From: Diadema antillarum
Taxonomy: Eukaryota
Direction: 5' to 3'
DNA: 64,000 nt
Assembly (NCBI RefSeq): GCF_040938485.1
Contig: NW_027270912.1
Location: forward strand, 620,001 to 684,000
Under the pieces are notes generated by a model. The model saw only the letters and a list, made by a program, of their open reading frames with translations, did not search any database and was not told where the DNA came from. This document shows positions 1 to 17,001 of this stretch, piece after piece (within the stretch, counting starts at the first letter, position 1; each line of letters opens with the position of its first letter). Both the position numbers and the translations under genes were made by a program.

Positions 1-3000
1 TCCCCATTCTGTATAAATTTTCCTTTGTCTTGATCTACAGTGGTCTGGATACACCTACAGTGATGAAACACATTGCAGAAATATTGAATTGGTTCATCAT
101 AACTTTTAAGGAAAGTGACCAATTTATGTAAAATACCTCTTTCACTCAGTTTTCAATTACTAGTAAATCAAGACATGACTAATCAAATTTGAAAAAAAAA
201 TACTGTTTGCTGTTAGCTATACAATGAACAATCATCCTGTTCTCATGAAATAGACTTGCTTGTTTTCATATTACAATTGAAAAGAATTGGGCAAAAACTG
301 GACATCATGGGACATTTGCTTTGCTGACCATATTTATTACATAACAGCCTACATTACATATAGCCTTTAATTGTTCCTTGTGGTATCTAACTGGGCTGGA
401 ACAAAGTCTGCACTACTTTACTTCACACACTGTCAGGTTGCACAGATCGGTATGAATTCAGACCAGATGGATTTAGACATAACTGCCATTCAGTGATCTC
501 CCGAATTCTACATGGTATACACAAACAAACCGAATTTCATCAACATTACAGCTTTTCAATTTTGGTAACTGCAAGATCACGCAGCTGATAACTCACTTCC
601 ACTTTACGAAAAATGATGTATCTACTAGCGAGAGGTAGACGTAGATTTATTGCATAAGACTCTGCCAAACTCTCCAAATTATATATGTTGTGACAATTTT
701 TTCATCAATCTGTTCGCAATGTGGAACTCCGTTTGTTTGTGTGTGTGTGTGTTTTTTTTTTTTAAATCACTCGATTTTGATTTCAAGTCCATCTGGACTC
801 CGAGTTTCTAATTATTATTCTTATACTTCACTACATCGCTTCTTGTAATGCAAGTTACAAAGTCTTTCCAAGAATAAAAATGGTGGTAGATATCTGATCT
901 AAATATGCACTTACAAATTCGACAGGACAAATTAAAAGTATTATAATCTAATGCAGTCACAATCACTTATCATGACCGATCGAGCCATTGAAATAAATGA
1001 CTGCTCTTCATTTGATTGTATATCAATCTTTTTTTCAACAAAAAAAAAATCTTGCTCAACAGACTTTTACCTGCCACATTTGTGAGTTATCCTCATCAAG
1101 GCACTGTCTCCAATACGAACATACTTCCACTTATCCTGGTTAAAGGAAGAAAAAGAAACATTTTTATTCATAAAGAAGACTGTGCTGGCAAATTTCACAT
1201 GTCACCTTCAGCTGTATAATATAAACTGAAAATTCAACATATACCACATTCCTGCACACAACTAAGCGCTCGGCAATATGTTGAAAAAAAAAAACTGCTG
1301 AATCAAAGAAATCTATAATAAACCTGAATGCATTTAGTAGCGGACTTGTCTCAAACCAGTGTGCAGTTTTGTTTTGTTTTTTCTCTCCAAATCTATGGTA
1401 TGCTCCTTTAGCCTGACTGGTTCATCCCTGCACTAGCAATGTTTGTGATTGCTATTCAGTGAGGTATAGCAATTAAAGGACTAGGTTGATAATACAGACG
1501 GGATGTTGCCCTGTAATTGTCTTTACACAGCCTGGAGACTACACCTTCTGAATCCATAAATCTTCCAGAATTGGCACGCAGGTCAGAGAGGCACAAGCAA
1601 CCCATGACGTTACAGCATTTTAGAAAACGAAATGGAAAATGCATAATTCATCATAACTGAATATAGAAGATTTCTGGTAGGTTGATATGCACTATTTCAC
1701 TAGCTAAATATGCATACTCATCAACAAATGTCAAGTTTGTCAGAGTAAGATAAAAATATTTTACTTTCTGAAATTACAGCTTTTAAAAAATTCCAAGATA
1801 AATATATAATTATGACAAAGGAGAGATGGAATAATATATATATATATATATATATAGTAACACAGACTCAGGGTAAAGTGTTTGAGAATTAACTCGACCT
1901 GGAGATTTGTCATGTTTCATGCACTTACTGTAGTCTACTTCCAAATTTCTGCAATTCACTCACCTCTTCATTAGCCGTTGCACACTGTACAACAATGTTC
2001 GGTCGGAAGTTGCGGAGTTGCACGGGTTTTTCAAGCTGGGAGTTGAGCTGTTCAAGAGACTTTTCACTCAAGATGTGGACTTGAGATAGATTCTGGTAAA
2101 CAGCCTGCATATTGTTTCACAAAAACATAAATGAAAATGACACACACAATCATTCAACTGAATTTGACATATTGTGGTAGTTATACATCGCATCTGGAAC
2201 GTTACTATGGCGACGGCTTTGGCGTATGGCTTCTTATAGGGTCAGCTCGCACTCACCCTTTCATGGCTTTTGGCCTTGTGTCCCCACTTGGAGTCGTCAC
2301 AAAGCACCTTGCCACCAAGTCTGTCCAGGTGCCGCATCAGTCTGAAGCGAGGTTCACCGAGGTATTGGTTCAGCCACTGCCTGGCCTCTTGCCCACAGTC
2401 CTCCCCCTTCAGTCCAAGTCTGAACACTCTTTTGATAAAAGCAGCAAGGTCAAAGTTTCAAATGAAAGAGTCAGTTATCAGCTCTTCAAAAGAGAATAGA
2501 TATCATTTACTTTGGCATTGATTGCAAGAAACAGAGATAAACTGCCTCCTTTAGGCCCTACATTTCCTGTGTAATGTACAGTGTATGTACGGTAATGTAT
2601 AGTCTCAAGTATGACTAATAAGGAAAAGCTAAAATTTGCTCTATTTATGGCCAGTTGTTTTATTCAATCTTAGTTCAATCAGGACTTACTGCATAATCAG
2701 CCTCTGAATTGGTCAGAGAGGTTTTTTCGGACATCACTTGAATATTTTGGTCCATTCACTAACTTCATGGTGGTTGGAAAAACATGTAATTCAACGATTT
2801 GTGTATACTATTATGGGGGCTATTTGGAAAATTACAAGGATCACTTATACACGATATCAATGTCGTCATGCCATTGGAAAGTTACAAATTGCAATTGCAA
2901 CTTTTTAATGCTTTAACTAACTGTACATAGCACTATACCTCAAATATCAATCTATATCTTCCTGCCGAGGATTATGATGTCACAATCATGCAACCATGTG

Positions 3001-3403
3001 CAGTGTTGACGGAAACATGATTACTCATCTACAATACCTTCACATGTAACTTCTTGAACTATAATTTCTTCTTCCTGCGGGCAAAGTGAGAAATAAAAAA
3101 TGGCGTTCAATTTACAAACCAGAACTAACTTTAATTACCTGACATCACCAACGGCTCCACCCTGCTCTGCCAGAGGTACCTGCAATGTAGGCATCCCTGG
3201 GGCATTGATGAGAAGACTTCTCCTGTCCTCAGAGAGGGTCGGAATGATGAGGGCGATGGAAGGGTAGACCCTTTGTGTGATGAACCGCCCCTCCTCATCA
3301 ACAATGATGAAAGACCTGTATGACGAATTCAGGGCATGGCTGATAGTGAATCAAATTAAACTCATTTGAATTGCCTCTATATCCCCTTTCATGGTTTAGA
3401 AAC

Positions 3404-3467
<64 letters not shown>

Positions 3468-3955
3468 GTTATGAGATATTACGAAGGAGAAGAGGGTGTG
3501 TAGAATTTGGAATTGTTATTCCTCTTATTGTTCCTCCAATTTGGGAAAGAGATTATATCATAATTATTATCATTTTAGTGAAACTCAATTCATTCTGTTG
3601 GTACTTTCCTCTGCATGTACAGTATATGTTCATTATAATTATATCAAAATAACTTGATAATTAATGGAGTTGCATTTGTGCTTCAACAATGTGAACTTGA
3701 GAGGATCTTCGTATTATACCTGTCCAAGACACCATCACTGCTAATCCCCAAGGAGACACAGTCGGCCTCTGTGACCTCAAGCCCTCGGCACGACTTGATG
3801 GGATGCACAAAGATTCGAGAGACCACACCGACTGGGGCATACTGTCGCCGAGAACGACGAAACACAGTGTAGTAGAGAAGTCCAAATCCAACTACACCGG
3901 CCGCACACGCTGCCAGGCAGCCAAGAATCAAGTTGTTATTGTTTGTCTCAGGCAT
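1..3955 (-). CDS. MTARC: Mitochondrial amidoxime-reducing component (mARC, MOSC domain), copy A, 3'-truncated by the window edge. Coding exons 3955-3720, 3315-3139, 2428-2257, 2104-1964, 1135-1071, 54-<1
   Basis: All introns are GT-AG with consistent phase. The protein has an N-terminal TM anchor (LILGCLAACAAGVVGFGLLYY-RRSRR), HPIKSCRG, LDRSFIIVD, NFRPNIVV and the Moco-ligating C-x-R-C (KCGRC), and is collinear with copy B and with vertebrate mARC1/2 as recalled. Confidence 0.95.
3403..3464. repeat. (TA)n microsatellite in intron 1 of mARC copy A
   Basis: Direct reading of the sequence. Confidence 0.95.
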
Positions 3956-4616
3956 GGTGACTTTTCACAAAGCAATCCTGTGTAATTCATATTGTAAAGA
4001 TAAAAACAACATAACAGAAATATATCACTGTGAAAACAGCACTCATTAAACTTTATCACATTCTTATCAAAGAAAATACAAACGAGTGGTTCGAGCGTTT
4101 TACGTCGGTAGATACAATTAACACTTGAAAAATGATAAGGATTTTTTTTAATTCAAATCAATAAAACTGTTTGTCTTATCTGTGTGAGCAATCCACTTGT
4201 TGAGACAAAAGAAAATTAAGAGCAGAGGGCTTGGACTGCTTAAGCCTCACACTGTAGACAGTATATAAACAATTGAAAATGTTTTGAATTACAAAAAAAA
4301 AAATGTATATGAGCACTTTAAAGCATACCATGAAATGCACTTCAAGTATTTTTCACTGATTCTTTTTTTCCCGTCTTTTCCTTGAAATTTCCCAACAAAT
4401 TATTACGTGAAACTGAGAATTGTGTTTTACCTGTATTACTTGCACGATATCCATAAATATTGAAAACTATTTTAGCATATTCATGATAGAGAGAGAGAGG
4501 GGGGGGGGGAGAGTAGAGAGAGGGAGAGCCGAGAGAGGGAGAGCCGAGGGAAAGAAATAAAAATAGATAGCTTGGCCTATACACATGACTTTTTAAAATA
4601 ATATGTAATTACATAC

Positions 4617-4751
4617 NNNNNNNNNNNNNNNNNNNNNNNNNNNNNNNNNNNNNNNNNNNNNNNNNNNNNNNNNNNNNNNNNNNNNNNNNNNNNNNNNNNN
4701 NNNNNNNNNNNNNNNNNNNNNNNNNNNNNNNNNNNNNNNNNNNNNNNNNNN
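4617..4751. other. Assembly gap (run of N) between the two mARC copies
   Basis: 135 N characters. Confidence 0.99.
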
Positions 4752-8550: not shown

Positions 8551-9575
8551 GTGAATCAAAGATTAGAAAAAAAAAAAGACGGGGCTCAAACAGCAAATTT
8601 GAAAATAGAGAGCTATATGGGCACAGATGACAAGATTTTCTCAGGGACCTGGATCCACCACATGGGTCAATGCTTATTGAGATAATTATGGTACATATTT
8701 TACTCACAGAATTAAAAAAGAGACTCTTTTAGTAATAAGGTTGAAATCACTTAAATTTGAAGGTGGAATTACCCGAATGAAATTCCCACAAGTTTATAGC
8801 AATGAGATCCCCGCAAGTTTAAATACTTTGTGCAGGCTCCACTTTTTAAAGGAGAAAATCGAGAAAAGTGAGAGAAAAACCTCAGTGATTTAAAAAAAAA
8901 ATTACATTTAATCAATCAATTTATTTATTTATCTATTTATTCATTCATTTATTTATTTAAAAAAACTTGTGATTGATTTCTATCACAAGTCTTTATATTA
9001 AATAAGACAGGCCCAGATGTTTTAATGAGTTTTGGAACACACGGTATGCCATACTTTCTGCACTCTTGCACTCGACTCATGTTCGCTCCGATCAGCGATC
9101 CACCCATAGACGGCCGCGGAACCTGCAGGGAGGTGCGGTCTGCATGCAAGGTGGACACCGTACCACGGAAAAGATCATCTGGAGATCGAGAAATCACACA
9201 TTAGTACACGGCGGGATCTGGAATGTACCGGGGGGTATGCGGTGCAGATTTTGTATGTGATAAATGGCAGATATCGGAGGGTAGAGAGCTGTCAGCTGTG
9301 CAGGGTTTCAGTTTCGTGTAAGTATCAAAGCACGTAGTCCTTACTGTTTCAAGGGAAGTCTTTCTGTAAGTGTATAGACTCTAGTGCAAATATATTGAGC
9401 ATCACCGTAAAGAAAAAATAAAAAGTGTGGCCTCAGCTCTTCATTGCATGGTGTATTTTCCTTTGAAAGAATGTGATAAAAGAGGGCTCTTTTAGTGTTA
9501 TCACATTGATACATTCATCTTTTTAAAAATGAATTTATGTGAATTTCACAGGATTGCCTATTGAAGAGAGTCATC

Positions 9576-12500
9576 ATGCCTGAGTCAAGCAATAACAACT
9601 TGATTCTTGGCTGCCTGGCGGCATGTGCGGCCGGTGTGGTTGGGTTTGGACTTCTCTACTATGCCGTGTTTCGTCGTTCTCGGCGACAGTATGCCCCAGT
9701 CGGTGTGGTCTCGCGAATCTTTGTGCATCCCATCAAGTCGTGCCGAGGGCTGGAGGTCACAGAGGCCGACTGTGTCTCCCTAGGGATTAGCAGTGATGGT
9801 GTCTTGGACAGGTTTGATCCCCCTCATGTTTTTGTTTGTTTTTTACATAAGTGCATCGCAATTTCATATTCATACTAGCTGCAACTCCACTTTATTTTAG
9901 GTGACTTTAATAGAGTTGTAGAGTAGAATTACGTCAGCAGAATAATGAAAGCTTCACTGAAATAGGTTATGAAATAAAAGGATGTGGACTAGTTTGCATT
10001 TCTCATTTTTCATCAAACATTGACATTTAGTCACAATGACATAGAAACTAAATGATTTTGAATTTGTGTAGATGCTGCAAGATTTAATGCTTGTTCCATA
10101 CTCGATCATCTTTGATACAGCTCTTGGTATGAATATAGTTATGTCAAGAGAAAATAAAGGCAGTTCAAACGTAAAATGCACTTTTAGCAAAGTCCCCGCT
10201 ATTCCATTTTTCAAACCACAGGTCTTTCATCATTGTTGATGAGGAGGGGAGGTTAGTATCACAGAGGGTATACCCTTCCATCGCCCTCATCATTCCGACC
10301 CTCTCCGAGGACAGGAGAAGTCTTCTCATCAACGCCCCAGGGATGCCTACATTGCAGGTACCTCTGGCAGAGCAGGGTGGAGCCATTGGTGATGTCAGGT
10401 AAGTAGTAAACTGGGTTCTGGTCTGTAAGCTGAACAACGTCTTTTTTTTCCTCACAATGTTCACTGGAAATGAGACATTATAGCGCAAGAGGTGACCTGT
10501 GATATCAGATGTAAAAAAAAAGAGTGCATTTTCTTTTAACCTAATCCTCAGGTGCAAGTTTATGTTTGCGGCATTGTAAAATGTAATTTATCACCAAATA
10601 TTTCATAGTCATGTAAATATAAATATTTTGTAAGATTTGAAGAAACAAGTTTCAACATGACTTCATGTAATACTGAATGATTAATCATTTTCAGGAATAG
10701 CAACAGAAATGATTTATGTTTTCCCATGCCAGTTATACTGAAATCAGTTCAGTGCTTTTGACATTTGGTCTCAGCAAAGATTTAGTTCATATGATTTGTG
10801 CTACATTTGATGGAGAATTATTTCATCTCCATACTATGCTCAGTGCTGTAAATTAAAAAATCATGTGACTGAAGGAGTGTAGAGTCTGTTACATTCTGTA
10901 CCAATGCATTTTAGTTCATTGGAAGTAACAGTATGTCCCCGCAATCTTTGCATACTCTTGAATTATCAAGCCCAAGATTTATTCTGTACTGCACAATTTC
11001 TTGCCCATTCTACCATCATTCCCTGCAAAACAAAGATTGCATGTTTTTAGATGCAAAAACTCTTGAAAGGCAAGTCTTTTTGTTCTTGTAGAATATGTGT
11101 TTGTTTTTGTAATAAATACTTTTGCATTGTCTAAATATAGAAATATAGACAAAGAGACATATAATATGGAAAAATATGTACTGCTTCCACCACTAAGTAA
11201 TGAAAGTACCAGAATTTTCCAATGGTATGAAGAAAATTCTCTGATCAATTCAGATAGGGACTGATCGCTGTGAATCTTTCATGAACCAGGGTTGTATCAA
11301 CCAACTGCCTTGGCTCTTGGACATTGCCAGAGCAAGTAAAGTAGCTTCTCCATATATTCACAGAGACTTCAACCCTAAGCACCTTCTGATCTGGAGATTC
11401 TCCCGCCTGAAACCCCTAGCAAACGGGTGACTCCAAGTTGAATGTGCGCTTCGCGCACATCACGAGCGCGAAGTGCAAAGTTCCTTGCGGCCGGGGTCCA
11501 GGGCCAGCTTAAGGACCCTGGAGGCTCTAGGGTTTTAGATGCCCTCTTGTGCTATCTAAGGTTTATTTTTCACCATACGATGGCAATAAGTAAGAAATCC
11601 TTTCCAACGGGAGACACAGAGCCAGGGCGGGAGAAATTAAATCTCAAGTGGGAGAACGGGAGATTTTGCAAAAATGGGTTTTCGGCGGGAGATCTCCCAT
11701 TGAAAGCGGGAGAGTTGGAGTCTCTGTATTCAATCTTCAGGCTACTTGCAGAGCCCACTGTGCATTATGACATATAACATGTAAAGGAGGCAATTTATCT
11801 CTTTGTTTTTCTTGTGATGGTGCAAAGTTAAATGATACCAATTCATTTCATTCTCTTTTGAAGAGCTGATAACTGGCTATTTCCAATGCTGACTTCTCTG
11901 CTTTCATCAAAAGGGTGTTCAGACTTGGACTGAAGGGGGAGGATTGTGGACCCGAGGCCAGTCAGTGGCTGAACCAGTACCTAGGTAAACCTCGCTTCAG
12001 GCTGATGCGGCACCTAGACAGACTTGGTGGCAAGGTGCTCTCTGACGACTCCAAGTGGGGACACAAGGCCAAGAGCCATGAAAGGGTGAGGGCAAGCTGA
12101 CCCCAAGATGCCCAGATTTTTGGGGTCATCAGGTTATTGGTGAAAGAAGTTGTAATCTTGTTAATAGTGTGAAATGAAGACATAATATACCTTGTGGTTA
12201 TGGTGTGGCATCTTATGATAATGACTGCAGGGCATTACAAAAAGTTAAGAAATCAGAAAAATGTGAAATTCTTTGTGCTACTGTGGGGATGCAGCTTGAG
12301 TTGACATGTGATGTGGACACTTGTCGCCTATATTATGTAAAACATATGTCAAAATTAGTAAGGGTTATAAATATAGTGGCTTTAAAGCTTGACCCATTTT
12401 GTCATTTCAATCACTCTCTGCAAGTTTGGTCGGAACACAACATCAAATAATATGACTTAGTTTACATTGCAACTGTATTAGTCTTGTGCTTGTGGTTTCT

Positions 12501-15500
12501 TTTTAACTCTGAAAGTAATATTTTCTTTTTCTTTTTATGAATGTTTTGTTTATATCTTCAGGGTGCTACATAGCTTTTTTTTTTTTTTTTTTTAAACACT
12601 TGCCCGGTCAGACAAGCAGATTTTTATATTGTTGCAGAACGTGGATGTTACTCGTCCAAAAAGAAAGTCCAAAAATGTAAGAAAATGGTATAGAAAATCA
12701 CTCAAAGGCTTGATAAAACCATGAAGATACAAGCTCCGTGACGAAACACATTCATTTGAATGAATGCACCCATTGATTCAAACTTAAACACATTAGAGTA
12801 ACAAACTTGGTTCGATCAAGTGTTGGTGTGGCATTGCATTGGGGCTTCTTCACGTAAGTGTTTGAAAGTTGCTGAAATGAATTTTTAACCTGCTGCATTA
12901 CTAAACAGTTAATATCTTTTGTATGGCTGACTTTGTGGGTTAGAAGGGGGAAAAGTGAAAGAATATGGCTTCAAAACTTTTTGCTTACCCAATTGGGGAA
13001 AGCATTTTTTTTTTCTCATTGTTCCAAAAAACTCGCCCGACTTTGATTCTCACTTGCCTCAGGCAATTGGGCAAGCACTTATGTAGCACCTTGATCTTGT
13101 AGTACACTAAAAATGCAACTGATTGACAAATTGCCCTCCATCGACGTAAATAAGCACTGAATTGATCAGTGTTATAGTAGTAGCCATGATAAAAAATCAT
13201 GGGCGTACATACTCGAGCAGGATTCGAACCTACGACCTCCTGATCACCGGACAGGCGTCATCTCCACTAGACCACCGAGCTTTCGCCCGACAGCAAGTGT
13301 TGGTTCTAATCCTTATAGCATGCAGCGGGTACTGCTTTTGTTATTCAAATTCATGAAAATTCTTCCGTTGACGCCTGTCCGGTGATCAGGAGGTCGTAGG
13401 TTCGAATCCTGCTCGAGTATGTACGCCCATGATTTTTTATCATGGCTACTACTATAACACTGATCAATTCAGTGCTTATTTACGTCGATGGAGGGCAATT
13501 TGTCAATCAGTTGCAATGAAAACACCTCGACGGAAGAATTTTCATGAATTTGAATTACACTAAAGTTGTTGTTTCCACTGCATGTTAAGCTTTCATAATG
13601 GCAGAGATGTCTGCAATTTTGAATGCTTTGCATTTGTTAAAATGGAAATGGCATAATCTAAATCGAATATCTAGATCAGAGCTACTCTATTTTTAGTGAG
13701 TTTATTATATTTTTGTGAAATAATGTGCAGGCTGTTTACCAGGATCTATCTCAAGTCAACATCCTGGGTGAAAAGTCACTTGAGCAGCTCAACTCCCATC
13801 TTGATGAACCGGTTACAATCCGCAACTTCCGACCGAACATTGTTGTGCAGTGTGAAACGGCTCATGAAGAGGTGAGTGAATTCTCGGTCTTGCCAATGCG
13901 CAGAAAATGCGCACGCTGAAGAGCTCTATCACAGATGCACTGTGGGATTCCTCGGTGCCCTTCTTCGCTTCAGGTTGTCTCACGCGAGTCGCAGTTCCCA
14001 TACGATTCAGTGGAGTTATTTGTCTGCTTTTCCATTAGTACCCCCTTTTTTCTTGGCTATAAGAGTTTCTAAGTTTTACTGATTTGCAGTCACTAGAGTC
14101 ATGGTTCACTACTGCAAGGCTTCAATGTGCTGGTCACATGATGGAAAGCGAAGAAATCTTCAACAAAAAATACCTCTGGATAAAGACAGAGTGTGATCTG
14201 AGTGCATGTGCAGCAAAACTGGGGCAAGTTTGTCCCATGAGCTATCCCATAATACATCTAAAACGCTGCTCTGCGCACAGCATCAAGGTATTGGTGATAT
14301 CGAGAATTGCAGACATGAGGAAGTACAATACTAAAGTTCTGTGAAAAAAGGCTCACTTTTTTGCACCATGGAAGACATCAAAAATTTGGGATGCACCTCA
14401 TAAAGAACACAAGAAAATCTTGGCAATGGTATCCAAACCTAATGTATGTCAGTGTTAGATTACTTGGATTTGGCCATTTCGTAACATTCCCAAATGCCTT
14501 TGTGGAAGAATGAGATAATGAAATGTAAATGTACACAGCTGTAGGTTACATTCTCAAATTAAATGGCAAACTCTCCATAATCATTGAAACTTTTCCTTTT
14601 CTTCCTTCTATCAGGATAAGTGGAAGTATGTGCGTATAGGAGACAGTGCCTTGATGAGGATAACTCACAAATGTGACAGGTAGGTATTGAGCAGTATGAT
14701 TTGTTGGATGATGGCATCCGCAGTCAAACTGGCAAAACTTTGTGAAGTTTGACCCGTTAAAGACTAGTCCCAAGCGTACTCGGGCAGTTGTCCATTGAAA
14801 ATGCATGTAATAACAAAATCAGCTTATCCTCAACAGGTTTAATAAGTTCTTACAGTCTTGCCAGTGTGATCACAAACTTCTCCCAAAACTTCCTGTTCAA
14901 CTAGGGACATTTCCTGAACCCTCGCAAATCTTCTCAAAGTTTGTGCAGGCTCAATGCTTGCAGCTGAAACTCTACAAACTTTGTCATGTGAGCAGTCCTC
15001 TTCCTGTCTTTGTGCCTGCAAAGCATGCACTCATTGAGATGTACGCTTGTGTATTGTTTATGTGACAGTCGTTAGCTTGTATACGGTGCACTCTTTCTCT
15101 TTTGTTGTGCATGCACACCGGCGACTCTAAACTTCAAGAACTTATTGAGAACTGAAACTTTAAGAAGCTTGGCCACCAGTGTGAACAGACAAGCAAAATT
15201 TGCAAAGAGTTCTCGAAATTAAACTTTGAGAAGTTTTGCCATTTTGACTGTGGCTTTTGTGTTGGACTGAAATATGTGTCAATTGTAGAATTAAAGTGAC
15301 TGCGAAGATGAATTCTTTTACTGCCTTAAAAGCATTGTAAAATAATTGCATTGTAAGAAAGTGAATCTAAGGTCTATAGACTTGAAAGCAAGATTGGATG
15401 AAAAAACAGGAACTCGGGGGAATAAATCATCAGAAGATAATGAATGTAGTGTAACGAACCTTGGTACACGAAGCCATTAGCCAACATTCTTCCAATCCAA

Positions 15501-17001
15501 CCAGATACCTCCATGGCACAAGACTTTTGTATGTTTATGAGATTAATGTAGCTGGCAGAGCTTACGAAGTGGTCAATGAATTGATGTCTGTTTCAGGGTA
15601 GTCCAATATACATGTTAAAAAAATCAACAAAACAAAAATGAAAGTTTGTTGCATATGTGTGCTAGATGATGTTGTCATTCCGACAAACTGAATACAAAAG
15701 TTATGAAGACAGGACATCACCGACTGTTCTGATCTCCTATCCGGCAGAGATGCTCTTGTCCAGAACTGTACAATTCCTGCCTTTTCAATGGATCATTCAA
15801 TTTTCCTTGGACTTCACTAATATGATTTTATAGTTTTCATGCAATCGTTGAATTTCCATGATGTCATACATGTATGCATGTACACCGATAAGTACTATTT
15901 TTGTCAGTAAGATCTTTATGTGATTTAAAACTCTTCATGAATGAGAGAGAGATTTATATTTGTATAAAATCTTGTGGTCTCATTCTTTAAAAGTAATGAT
16001 GGACAGGGTTATCCAGTAAAAGAATTGTCCTGAACAATGTGCTTCTTCACCGTAGGTGTATGCTGACCACTGTGGACCAGGACAAAGGAAAATTCATACA
16101 GAATGGGGACCCACTGGCCACACTCAAGAAGTATGTACATTATACAAAGTATGCACTGTTATGGGCAGAGATCTTGTCGTGTGGTTGACACAACTTCTAC
16201 CATCAATTGTTTCAGTGTTACATATTACCTTTTTGAATGCATGATCAATGAGTACACTCTAAAAGTGTCTTTGCTCAAGACATGTATTTTTTTTTCTTTA
16301 TGCGCTTCTTCTCTCATAGATTTTTTTCCCTTTAAACAGTGAAGTGTAAGACGATGTTCGAGGTCATATTCAGTTCTTGTGACTGAAAGTCATGAGCCAT
16401 TGAGTGGCTTCAACTAGAAAACATTGCATGAAATAATTGAACAGTGTGTAATGAAAGACAAGTGCTAACTCTAAAGGAGACTATCATTTGAATATATACA
16501 TTATCATTTTCATCACATTCATTATGTATCATTATTTTTTGTCGTCCTCATCATCACAGTTTGTTGTCATCATCGTTGTGAGTATCTTAATAAGATATAG
16601 TTAGCTGCAGTTCCAACAACTAGCAAGCCCAACCCATGCTCAGGTAGCCGTTGATGTCTAAATAAATCGGGCAACACAGAATTGTAGCAATTTCATCAAA
16701 CTCAAATTACATTTGTCGAAGTCAGTTTGAAAATGGTATGAATTCCACTAAAAACTTTTTTACTTTCGAATCGGGTTGTTTTGTGGTTTATGCAGTCGTG
16801 ATCTGTGGCACCTCTCATCACTGTTCATTGTGCCTTTTCCCCCTTTTTGATGTTGTTCACTTGCATAGGATAAGGATGGCTCCACCCGACAGCCCAGACA
16901 AGAAATCGCACGGCTCTTCCCCACTCTTTGGAGTTAACCTGGCTGTGGAGTCGACTGGGGCCATCAAGCTAGGGGATGTCGTTTATGCCTCAATGGATTG
17001 A
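9576..17001 (+). CDS. MTARC: Mitochondrial amidoxime-reducing component (mARC), copy B, complete, 332 aa. Coding exons 9576-9811, 10222-10398, 11914-12085, 13731-13871, 14615-14679, 16056-16130, 16869-17001
   Basis: Exons sum to 999 nt (332 aa + TGA) with canonical splice sites. Motifs are HPIKSCRG, AVYQD, NFRPNIVV, KCDRCMLTTVD, SPLFGVNL and IKLGDVVY. An acceptor at 9551/9552 and a gtaagt donor at 9318 imply a 5' UTR exon ending at 9317. Confidence 0.96.
10960..11355 (-). mobile_element. Degraded L1/Tx1-type LINE ORF2 3' fragment
   Basis: The minus-strand frame ..LLYLLWQCPRAKAV.. resembles the C-terminal zinc-knuckle (HLFWxCPxAxxxW), and the sequence downstream is broken by stops. Confidence 0.4.
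11360..11727. mobile_element. MITE-like element in intron 2 of mARC copy B
   Basis: Termini are acagagacttcaac..ctcccgc and gcgggagagttggagtctctgt. The GC-rich core gcgcgaag..gcggccggggtccagggcc..aaggaccctgga is a repeat I recall from marine invertebrate genomes. Confidence 0.6.
13112..13555 (-). mobile_element. tRNA-derived SINE-like element inserted as a fold-back in intron 3 of mARC copy B
   Basis: The tRNA-like head (minus 13280-13210) has an A-box TGGTCTAGTGG and a B-box GGTTCGAATCC. There is a perfect 147-bp inverted repeat (13114-13260 / 13369-13515), a second 26-bp inverted repeat (13343-13368 / 13530-13555) and a flanking direct repeat tacactaaa (13103-13111 / 13556-13564). Confidence 0.85.

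Follow-up and report, generated by a model that had tools for sequence, protein, structure and literature searches.

An mARC paralog of the sea urchin Diadema antillarum with asparagine in place of a near-invariant aspartate

The human genes for mARC (mitochondrial amidoxime reducing component) matter for drug metabolism and liver-disease genetics, and it is not yet settled which substrate mARC has physiologically and which of its residues are catalytic. Human mARC1 and mARC2 (MTARC1 and MTARC2; PDB 6FW2 and 7P41) consist of a MOSC_N and a MOSC domain and carry an RC and an FRPN motif. For crARC, the enzyme of the alga Chlamydomonas, replacement of aspartate 182 by alanine (D182A) abolished all activity, with dithionite as well as with NADH, at a normal content of molybdenum cofactor (Moco); a homology model places D182 close to the Mo centre (PMC5372681). 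F210, R211 and N213 of the crARC FRPN motif are needed for Moco binding. We describe here two mARC genes, A and B, which lie head to head, 5.6 kb apart, in a window of 64,000 nucleotides from the sea urchin Diadema antillarum (assembly GCF_040938485.1, contig NW_027270912.1, positions 620,001 to 684,000); all coordinates below are those of this window. Their products share the domains, fold and both motifs of the human proteins and are 89% identical to each other, but B has Asp and A has Asn at the column of the algal D182.

The explanation that we favour is that copy A is an expressed, selectively maintained and functionally diverged "Asn-type" mARC, which probably went through a burst of replacements after duplication, then came back under constraint, and whose catalysis, by analogy with the algal mutant, is likely to be changed.

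The two copies and codon 200

Models of both genes were built from the blastn matches of A to B and from splice signals. Each gene has seven coding exons separated by GT-AG introns and encodes 332 amino acids, and exon lengths are the same in A and B. The translation of B is 100% identical to P0046 (XP_071511892.1), and the 281 residues of A encoded in the window are 100% identical to P0047 (XP_071498842.1); NCBI names both proteins [quoted passage not shown]. Copy A lies on the minus strand and leaves the window within exon 6. The remainder of exon 6 and exon 7 were taken from locus L001 (GCA_040938485.1, JBFRCO010000024.1), whose overlap with the window is identical. The initial annotation had described A as intact within the window, and this holds for all 332 codons and seven exons, the off-window part included. 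Reading frame, GT-AG splice sites and the codon for the Mo-ligand Cys are likewise intact in both A (codon 53–51) and B (16057–16059).

Both proteins scored above the curated Pfam cut-offs for MOSC_N (PF03476; 104.8 bits for A, 100.4 for B) and MOSC (PF03473; 73.3 and 71.1 bits). An AlphaFold2 (AF2) model of A had a predicted local distance difference test score (pLDDT) of 92.6 and a predicted template modelling score (pTM) of 0.87, and Foldseek matched it to 29aj, 7p41 and 6fw2 (E about 1e-29 to 1e-30, template modelling score of the query (TMq) 0.81, root mean square deviation 2.1 Å). Residues 7–35 of the model form a helix of low pLDDT over the hydrophobic stretch LILGCLAACAAGVVGFGLLYY, a putative membrane anchor. 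The pair R264-C265, of which the Cys is the Mo-coordinating residue (Cys273 of human mARC1, C252 of crARC), is invariant across an alignment of 58 sequences, and both A and B have it. The motif NFRPNIVV is identical in the two copies, with R229 and P230 invariant and F228 and N231 at least 90% conserved. The Asp that is conserved where the MOSC domain begins is kept in B (Asp200) and replaced in A (Asn200). This lowers the claim of A to be a canonical active mARC; its membership of the family by descent is unaffected.

Correspondence of residue 200 with the algal Asp is given by distances along the chain. D182 of crARC lies 28 residues before F210, and E224-D225 lie 14 after it; the Diadema proteins have equal spacings (D/N200, F228, E242-D243), from which we infer that D182 is the equivalent of residue 200. 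That the equivalent Asp is needed for activity in an algal ARC, as the initial annotation had stated, is borne out by the inactive D182A protein (PMC5372681).

Codon 200 is AAT in A (2092–2090, minus strand; AVYQN) and GAT in B (13743–13745, plus strand; AVYQD), as first reported. It belongs to exon 4 (1964–2104 on the minus strand for A, 13731–13871 on the plus strand for B), which encodes residues 196–242 at the start of the MOSC domain. Four public sequencing runs were aligned to positions 1–4000. X1 and X2 are DNA runs from two different studies, and their contigs run from the introns of A through exon 4 with 1972 T>G as the sole difference. It changes codon 240 (1970–1972, minus strand) from AAT (Asn), as in the window, to CAT (His), and Asn200 is unaffected. 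Asn200 is therefore confirmed, and one of the ten exon-4 amino acid differences between A and B is a polymorphism: X1, X2, the second D. antillarum haplotig protein (P0177) and copy A of Diadema setosum all have the B-like His at residue 240.

Coverage of run X3 was limited to exons, with introns uncovered, and X3 is therefore a transcript library. A 370-letter contig of this run joined exons 5, 4 and 3 of A at the predicted junctions (1134 to 1963 and 2103 to 2256) with no differing letter. Copy A, according to the X3 contigs, is transcribed and correctly spliced and has AAT in its transcripts. The window, X1, X2, P0177 and the D. setosum ortholog agree on Asn200, which is therefore neither an error, as the initial annotation had named for a possible refutation, nor a private allele. 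Between the two D. antillarum haplotypes, A has five amino acid differences and B none. Other letters seen in exons 1 and 2 were considered as alleles of A and rejected, since each is the B letter and the loose ends match B introns.

Divergence, constraint and gene conversion

A cluster look-up gave, from D. setosum, P0175 and P0176 as the orthologs of A and B, and P0179 as that of a third mARC, paralog C; C of D. antillarum (P0050, XP_071479054.1) lies on another contig and is 61% identical to A and B. The D. setosum copies (loci L002 and L003) keep the same head-to-head order; the next gene past A has a GOST_TM domain, and the one past B, which lies on the opposite strand, a Sas10/Utp3 domain. 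Codon 200 of D. setosum A is AAT. Of the ten differences that separate A from B in exon 4, D. setosum A shares eight, positions 237 and 240 not being fixed. The duplication and the change from Asp to Asn are therefore older than the split of the two species.

Selection was analysed on four coding sequences, A and B from each species, with non-synonymous (dN) and synonymous (dS) divergence per site. Orthologs of A differed by dS 0.265 and dN 0.018 (dN/dS 0.07), and orthologs of B by dS 0.165 and dN 0.005 (dN/dS 0.03). Purifying selection is thus strong on A as well as on B.

The reading in which Asn200 is a private allele or stems from an error of sequencing or assembly, or in which A is a decaying duplicate, draws on the polymorphic N240 and on the faster protein evolution of A, which is about threefold that of B (tree stems of 0.065 and 0.021). 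It is hardly credible and already refuted by these data: four independent data sets and a second species have AAT, and A has an intact frame, is correctly spliced and transcribed, and shows dN/dS of 0.07 over dS of 0.27, a value which also led us to reject decay or relaxed constraint on A taken singly.

The differences between A and B have another composition. Those fixed in both species were 9 non-synonymous and 1 synonymous for exon 4, 14 and 7 for exon 7, and 9 and 4 for the other five exons, whereas private changes, those seen in a single gene of the four, were 15 non-synonymous and 61 synonymous. The contrast of fixed with private changes was significant for the whole gene (p = 1.8e-8) and for exon 4 (9/1 versus 2/10, p = 0.0019). 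On the stem between the copies, dN/dS was about 2.6 for exon 4, a value that rejects 0.2 (p = 0.002), and 0.7 elsewhere; afterwards it was 0.076. Fixed non-synonymous changes per site amounted to 0.082 in exon 4 and 0.146 in exon 7, compared with 0.016 elsewhere, and the excess over the rest was significant for both exons (p = 8e-4 and p = 2.5e-7, respectively). On this comparison of coding sequences, the differences appear to have arisen in a burst that was centred on exons 4 and 7, both of the MOSC domain. The initial annotation had proposed that A is intact but neofunctionalised; strong constraint together with heavily non-synonymous fixed differences fits functional divergence and not decay.

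Between A and B of the window, exon 4 differs at 17 of 141 nucleotides and 10 of 47 amino acids. Counting by the Nei-Gojobori method reproduced exactly the earlier hand counts of non-synonymous (Nd) and synonymous (Sd) differences: Nd 11 and Sd 6 for exon 4, Nd 3 and Sd 10 for exon 1. The dN/dS values were 0.50 for exon 4, 0.09 for exon 1 and 0.12 for the in-window exons other than exon 4, and the excess of exon 4 in the window was significant by Fisher tests (p = 0.02 for Nd:Sd, p = 0.001 for Nd per non-synonymous site). The claim that amino acid change is concentrated in exon 4 thus stands within the window, but not once the off-window exon 7 is counted, which is at least as diverged (12 of 43 amino acids, dN 0.155, versus 10 of 47, dN 0.108). 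When exon 4 was compared with all other exons, exon 7 included, p was 0.06. Relative to the gene mean, the amino acid divergence of exon 4 was 1.96x for A and B versus 0.8–1.0x for other echinoderm ortholog pairs, and so exon 4 is not intrinsically fast.

By outgroup comparison, three exon-4 changes are derived in A (D200N, N205H and D220E) and another three in B, and the remaining four are ambiguous. For exon 7, eight of the 12 changes were derived in A. The lineage of A and B together has a long stem (0.29) relative to paralog C.

Gene conversion, which the initial annotation had set aside in view of the about equal synonymous density of exons 1 and 4, is not absent between A and B: exons 1–6 look homogenised, and exon 7 does not. 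Fixed synonymous divergence per site was 0.21 for exon 7, 0.03 for exon 4 and 0.023 for the rest of the gene, and is thus about nine times higher in exon 7 than elsewhere. Likewise, dS between the paralogs was 0.5–0.75 for exon 7 and about 0.2 elsewhere. Introns of A and B are barely alignable past the exon flanks. The simplest reading of these silent sites would be an old duplication in which exons 1–6 were homogenised until about the Diadema split and exon 7 escaped. If so, exon 4 would be young at its silent sites and yet carry nine fixed replacements, which hints at selection for divergence more strongly than any other observation.

In D. setosum, exon 3 of A (L002, 12251–12422) and exon 3 of B (L003, 11419–11590) differ by a dS of 0.08, versus 0.2–0.3 for other comparisons, and D. 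setosum A has B-like residues at 151, 154 and 181. By its silent sites and these residues, this exon looks like a recent tract of gene conversion between A and B. Import of exon 4 of A by conversion from a distant Asn-type paralog was also considered. It was rejected, exon 4 of A and B being 88% identical with a dS of 0.22, and was ruled out too by the set of mARC paralogs seen in either Diadema species, which is limited to the three A, B and C.

The unequal constraint on the two copies also bears on another explanation, that A is a non-catalytic pseudo-enzyme which folds, is anchored and binds Moco, cytochrome b5 or both, with a role in binding, storage or regulation. A is constrained, but less than B (dN/dS 0.07 and 0.03; five haplotype differences and none), Asp to Asn is a classic change for killing activity while sparing structure, and crARC D182A holds Moco without activity (PMC5372681). 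Against this, A keeps the Mo-ligand Cys, the FRPN motif and all other conserved residues of active-site type, which a mere binder would not need, and we found no precedent for an mARC pseudo-enzyme in the literature searched. We regard this explanation as quite improbable.

Distribution of Asn at the conserved column

Homologs were collected by a search with the exon-4 peptide, which gave full-length relatives, and then with a profile of these and the exon pieces of the window. Among 139 homologs of at least 200 amino acids, column 200 was Asp in 129, Asn in 3, Glu in 2, His in 2 and another residue in 3. All non-Asp cases were animal proteins, and all non-animal homologs in the survey had Asp. 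Asn is carried by Diadema A, by the camarodont urchin proteins P0053 (S. purpuratus) and P0167 (L. variegatus), and by P0010 of the acorn worm Ptychodera flava; P0167 joined this set from further echinoid sequences, beyond the survey of 139. Glu was found in an Asterias paralog and in a frog protein, and His in two Branchiostoma paralogs. In the genomes looked at, those of the Asn-, Glu- or His-bearing urchins, Asterias and Branchiostoma, Asp-type paralogs are present as well.

Phylogenetic analysis placed the camarodont Asn clade inside the camarodont group (support 95/97), and Diadema A and B in a clade of their own (100/100). With this placement the Asn state needs three changes. Forcing Diadema A and B together with the camarodont Asn clade cost 15 log-likelihood units, so that this grouping is rejected no more than borderline (approximately unbiased (AU) test, p = 0.055). 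Going by the tree, the urchin origins of Asn are likely to be independent.

The camarodont Asn-type paralogs resemble A in several ways. They have Asn in this column, followed five residues on by His, and their genomes contain Asp-type paralogs as well, as B is present beside A. Their amino acid divergence between genera is 13%, compared with 16% for the Asp-type pair. In the L. variegatus pair (P0049, Asp-type, and P0167, Asn-type), exon 4 is the most diverged, at 1.5x the gene mean. They differ from A in being only 55% identical to it. The same Asn is thus seen again in one further clade of urchin paralogs at least, apparently a separate one, and this suggests that selection and not accident lies behind the change.

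Over the 57 columns with a conservation of 75% or more, the departures peculiar to A are D200N and the conservative V327I, and no others. Four departures from the family are shared by A and B: G236C, T274K, E282D and Y290V/I. The first of them, Cys236 (1984–1982 in A, 13851–13853 in B), is found in both copies of both species, versus Gly in 94% of homologs, so that the motif reads FRPNIVVQC in place of FRPNIVV-x-G. Paralog C has the MOSC_N and MOSC domains of A and B, the canonical Asp and Gly, and the same conserved residues.

These conservation data can also be read to mean that A is catalytically ordinary. In that case the near-isosteric Asn would be tolerated, the copies would be partitioned mainly in expression (subfunctionalisation), and the changes in exons 4 and 7 would be nearly neutral, following a brief relaxed phase. 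Retention of every conserved residue other than D200 and V327 agrees with such an enzyme, as do the Glu and His of other animal paralogs, by which the site is not absolutely fixed. In addition, the dN/dS of the stem is not significantly above 1, and several exon-4 differences fall at columns that vary among echinoderm orthologs. However, Asp is found in 129 of 139 homologs, with all non-animal ones in the survey among them, crARC D182A is inactive (PMC5372681), Asn has been kept in two Diadema species, and both Asn and an excess of exon-4 divergence recur in an apparently separate urchin clade. An ordinary A is, in our judgement, unlikely.

We therefore return to a functionally diverged, Asn-type copy A, for which the following course of events can be proposed. 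The duplication that gave A and B would have preceded the split of D. antillarum and D. setosum. A burst of amino acid replacements would then have affected the MOSC-domain exons 4 and 7 of both copies, with Asp200 turned into Asn in A by a single G-to-A change, and strong purifying selection on A and B would have followed. A would have kept the Mo-ligand Cys, the FRPN motif, the putative N-terminal anchor and all conserved residues but D200N and V327I. A near-invariant Asp, and a D182A mutant of crARC that is inactive and Moco-loaded, together point by analogy to altered catalysis in A. The amide in place of the carboxylate most likely lowers or re-tunes the classical N-hydroxy reductase activity and leaves Moco binding in place; proton delivery, Mo redox potential and substrate preference are candidate routes.

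Five points weigh against this proposal. The change from Asp to Ala in the alga is harsher than one from Asp to Asn, and Asn may be tolerated. A dN/dS above 1 was not shown for the exon-4 stem, where the value of 2.6 is based on ten changes (p = 0.30). Gene conversion between A and B means that the ratios of fixed non-synonymous to synonymous changes need careful reading. Exon-4 changes occurred on both lineages, so that the divergence is not all that of A. Finally, the evidence for expression of A consists of assembled contigs from one run, X3.

More tentatively, we raise the possibility that Asn-type mARCs are a recurrent and unrecognised functional class, in which ambulacrarians (Diadema, camarodonts and the acorn worm Ptychodera) swapped the carboxylate of the catalytic site for an amide and remodelled the exon-4 segment after duplication. 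If this is true, such a paralog might prefer other substrates or charges (e.g. anionic ones such as nitrite), have a shifted Mo redox potential or fill a non-catalytic role, and natural Asp/Asn pairs would give a handle on the physiological role of mARC. A and B, 89% identical, differing at the activity-critical Asp and kept in two species, are a ready-made experiment on this residue. They are also a case study of a replacement burst after duplication, a return to strict constraint, and conversion that homogenises part of a gene.

Gene structure and comparison with known mARCs

The remaining exons of A, all on the minus strand, are exon 1 (3720–3955, with the ATG at 3955), exon 2 (3139–3315), exon 3 (2257–2428), exon 5 (1071–1135) and exon 6, cut by the window start (1–54). 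Exon 1 encodes the predicted N-terminal membrane anchor and the start of MOSC_N, and its translation agrees with P0047. Exon 2 has AG/GT borders, and spliced X3 contigs join it to exon 3 (2428 to 3139); exon 3 is itself covered by a spliced X3 contig with no other letters. The short segment in the window of exon 6 includes the codon for Cys265. Gene B, on the plus strand, comprises exon 1 (9576–9811, its translation agreeing with P0046), exons 2, 3 and 5 according to the gene model (10222–10398, 11914–12085 and 14615–14679), exon 6 (16056–16130, with the Cys265 codon) and exon 7 (16869–17001, including the stop codon). The blastn match of 1218–1068 to 14532–14682 was considered as an intronic repeat and rejected, as it is exon 5 with its flank.

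A second NCBI model of B, P0178 (XP_071498854.1, 367 amino acids), has 35 extra N-terminal residues, the first 27 of which match an open reading frame (ORF) at 9066–9260, upstream of the ATG of B. The 332-residue form, P0046, starts at 9576, like A and the D. setosum genes. The 35 residues seem to reflect an upstream start within the 5' leader rather than conserved coding sequence.

The space between the two mARC genes contains a run of 135 N (4617–4751). Within intron 3 of B, ARAGORN called a tRNA-Thr(GGU)-like element at 13208–13282 on the minus strand. ORFs at 12985–13200 (minus) and 13429–13563 (plus) have identical first 29 residues, consistent with an inverted duplication. In the introns of A, repeats were skipped, with reads apparently cut, at 725–770, 1360–1390 and 1825–1866, and the ORF translations of 1761–1959 and 3366–3652, with their YIYIYI runs, are AT-rich microsatellite.

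With regard to described systems, the Diadema mARCs are about 35–40% identical to non-echinoid animal homologs. We found no paper on echinoderm mARCs in the literature searched. Bacterial YcbX has the same two domains and the same conserved residues, but YcbX-type proteins are not known to have the N-terminal anchor of the animal proteins. The human mARC pair presumably goes back to a duplication separate from that of the Diadema pair. In the human mARC1 chain (6FW2), the segment AYSD...NFRPNIV aligns to Diadema exon 4, that of B included. We take its Asp to be the residue that the initial annotation numbered Asp209 and placed at the Mo centre. Neither Asp209 nor D209 is mentioned with mARC1 in the literature searched, to which the M187K preprint and a review of 2023 belong, but not the PNAS structure paper of 2018. 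The crARC mutant D182A differs from A in carrying Ala and not Asn, and in being an algal enzyme assayed in vitro. A and B, already annotated as mARC2-like, are no new kind of system; where human mARC1 has the aligned Asp, copy A carries Asn.

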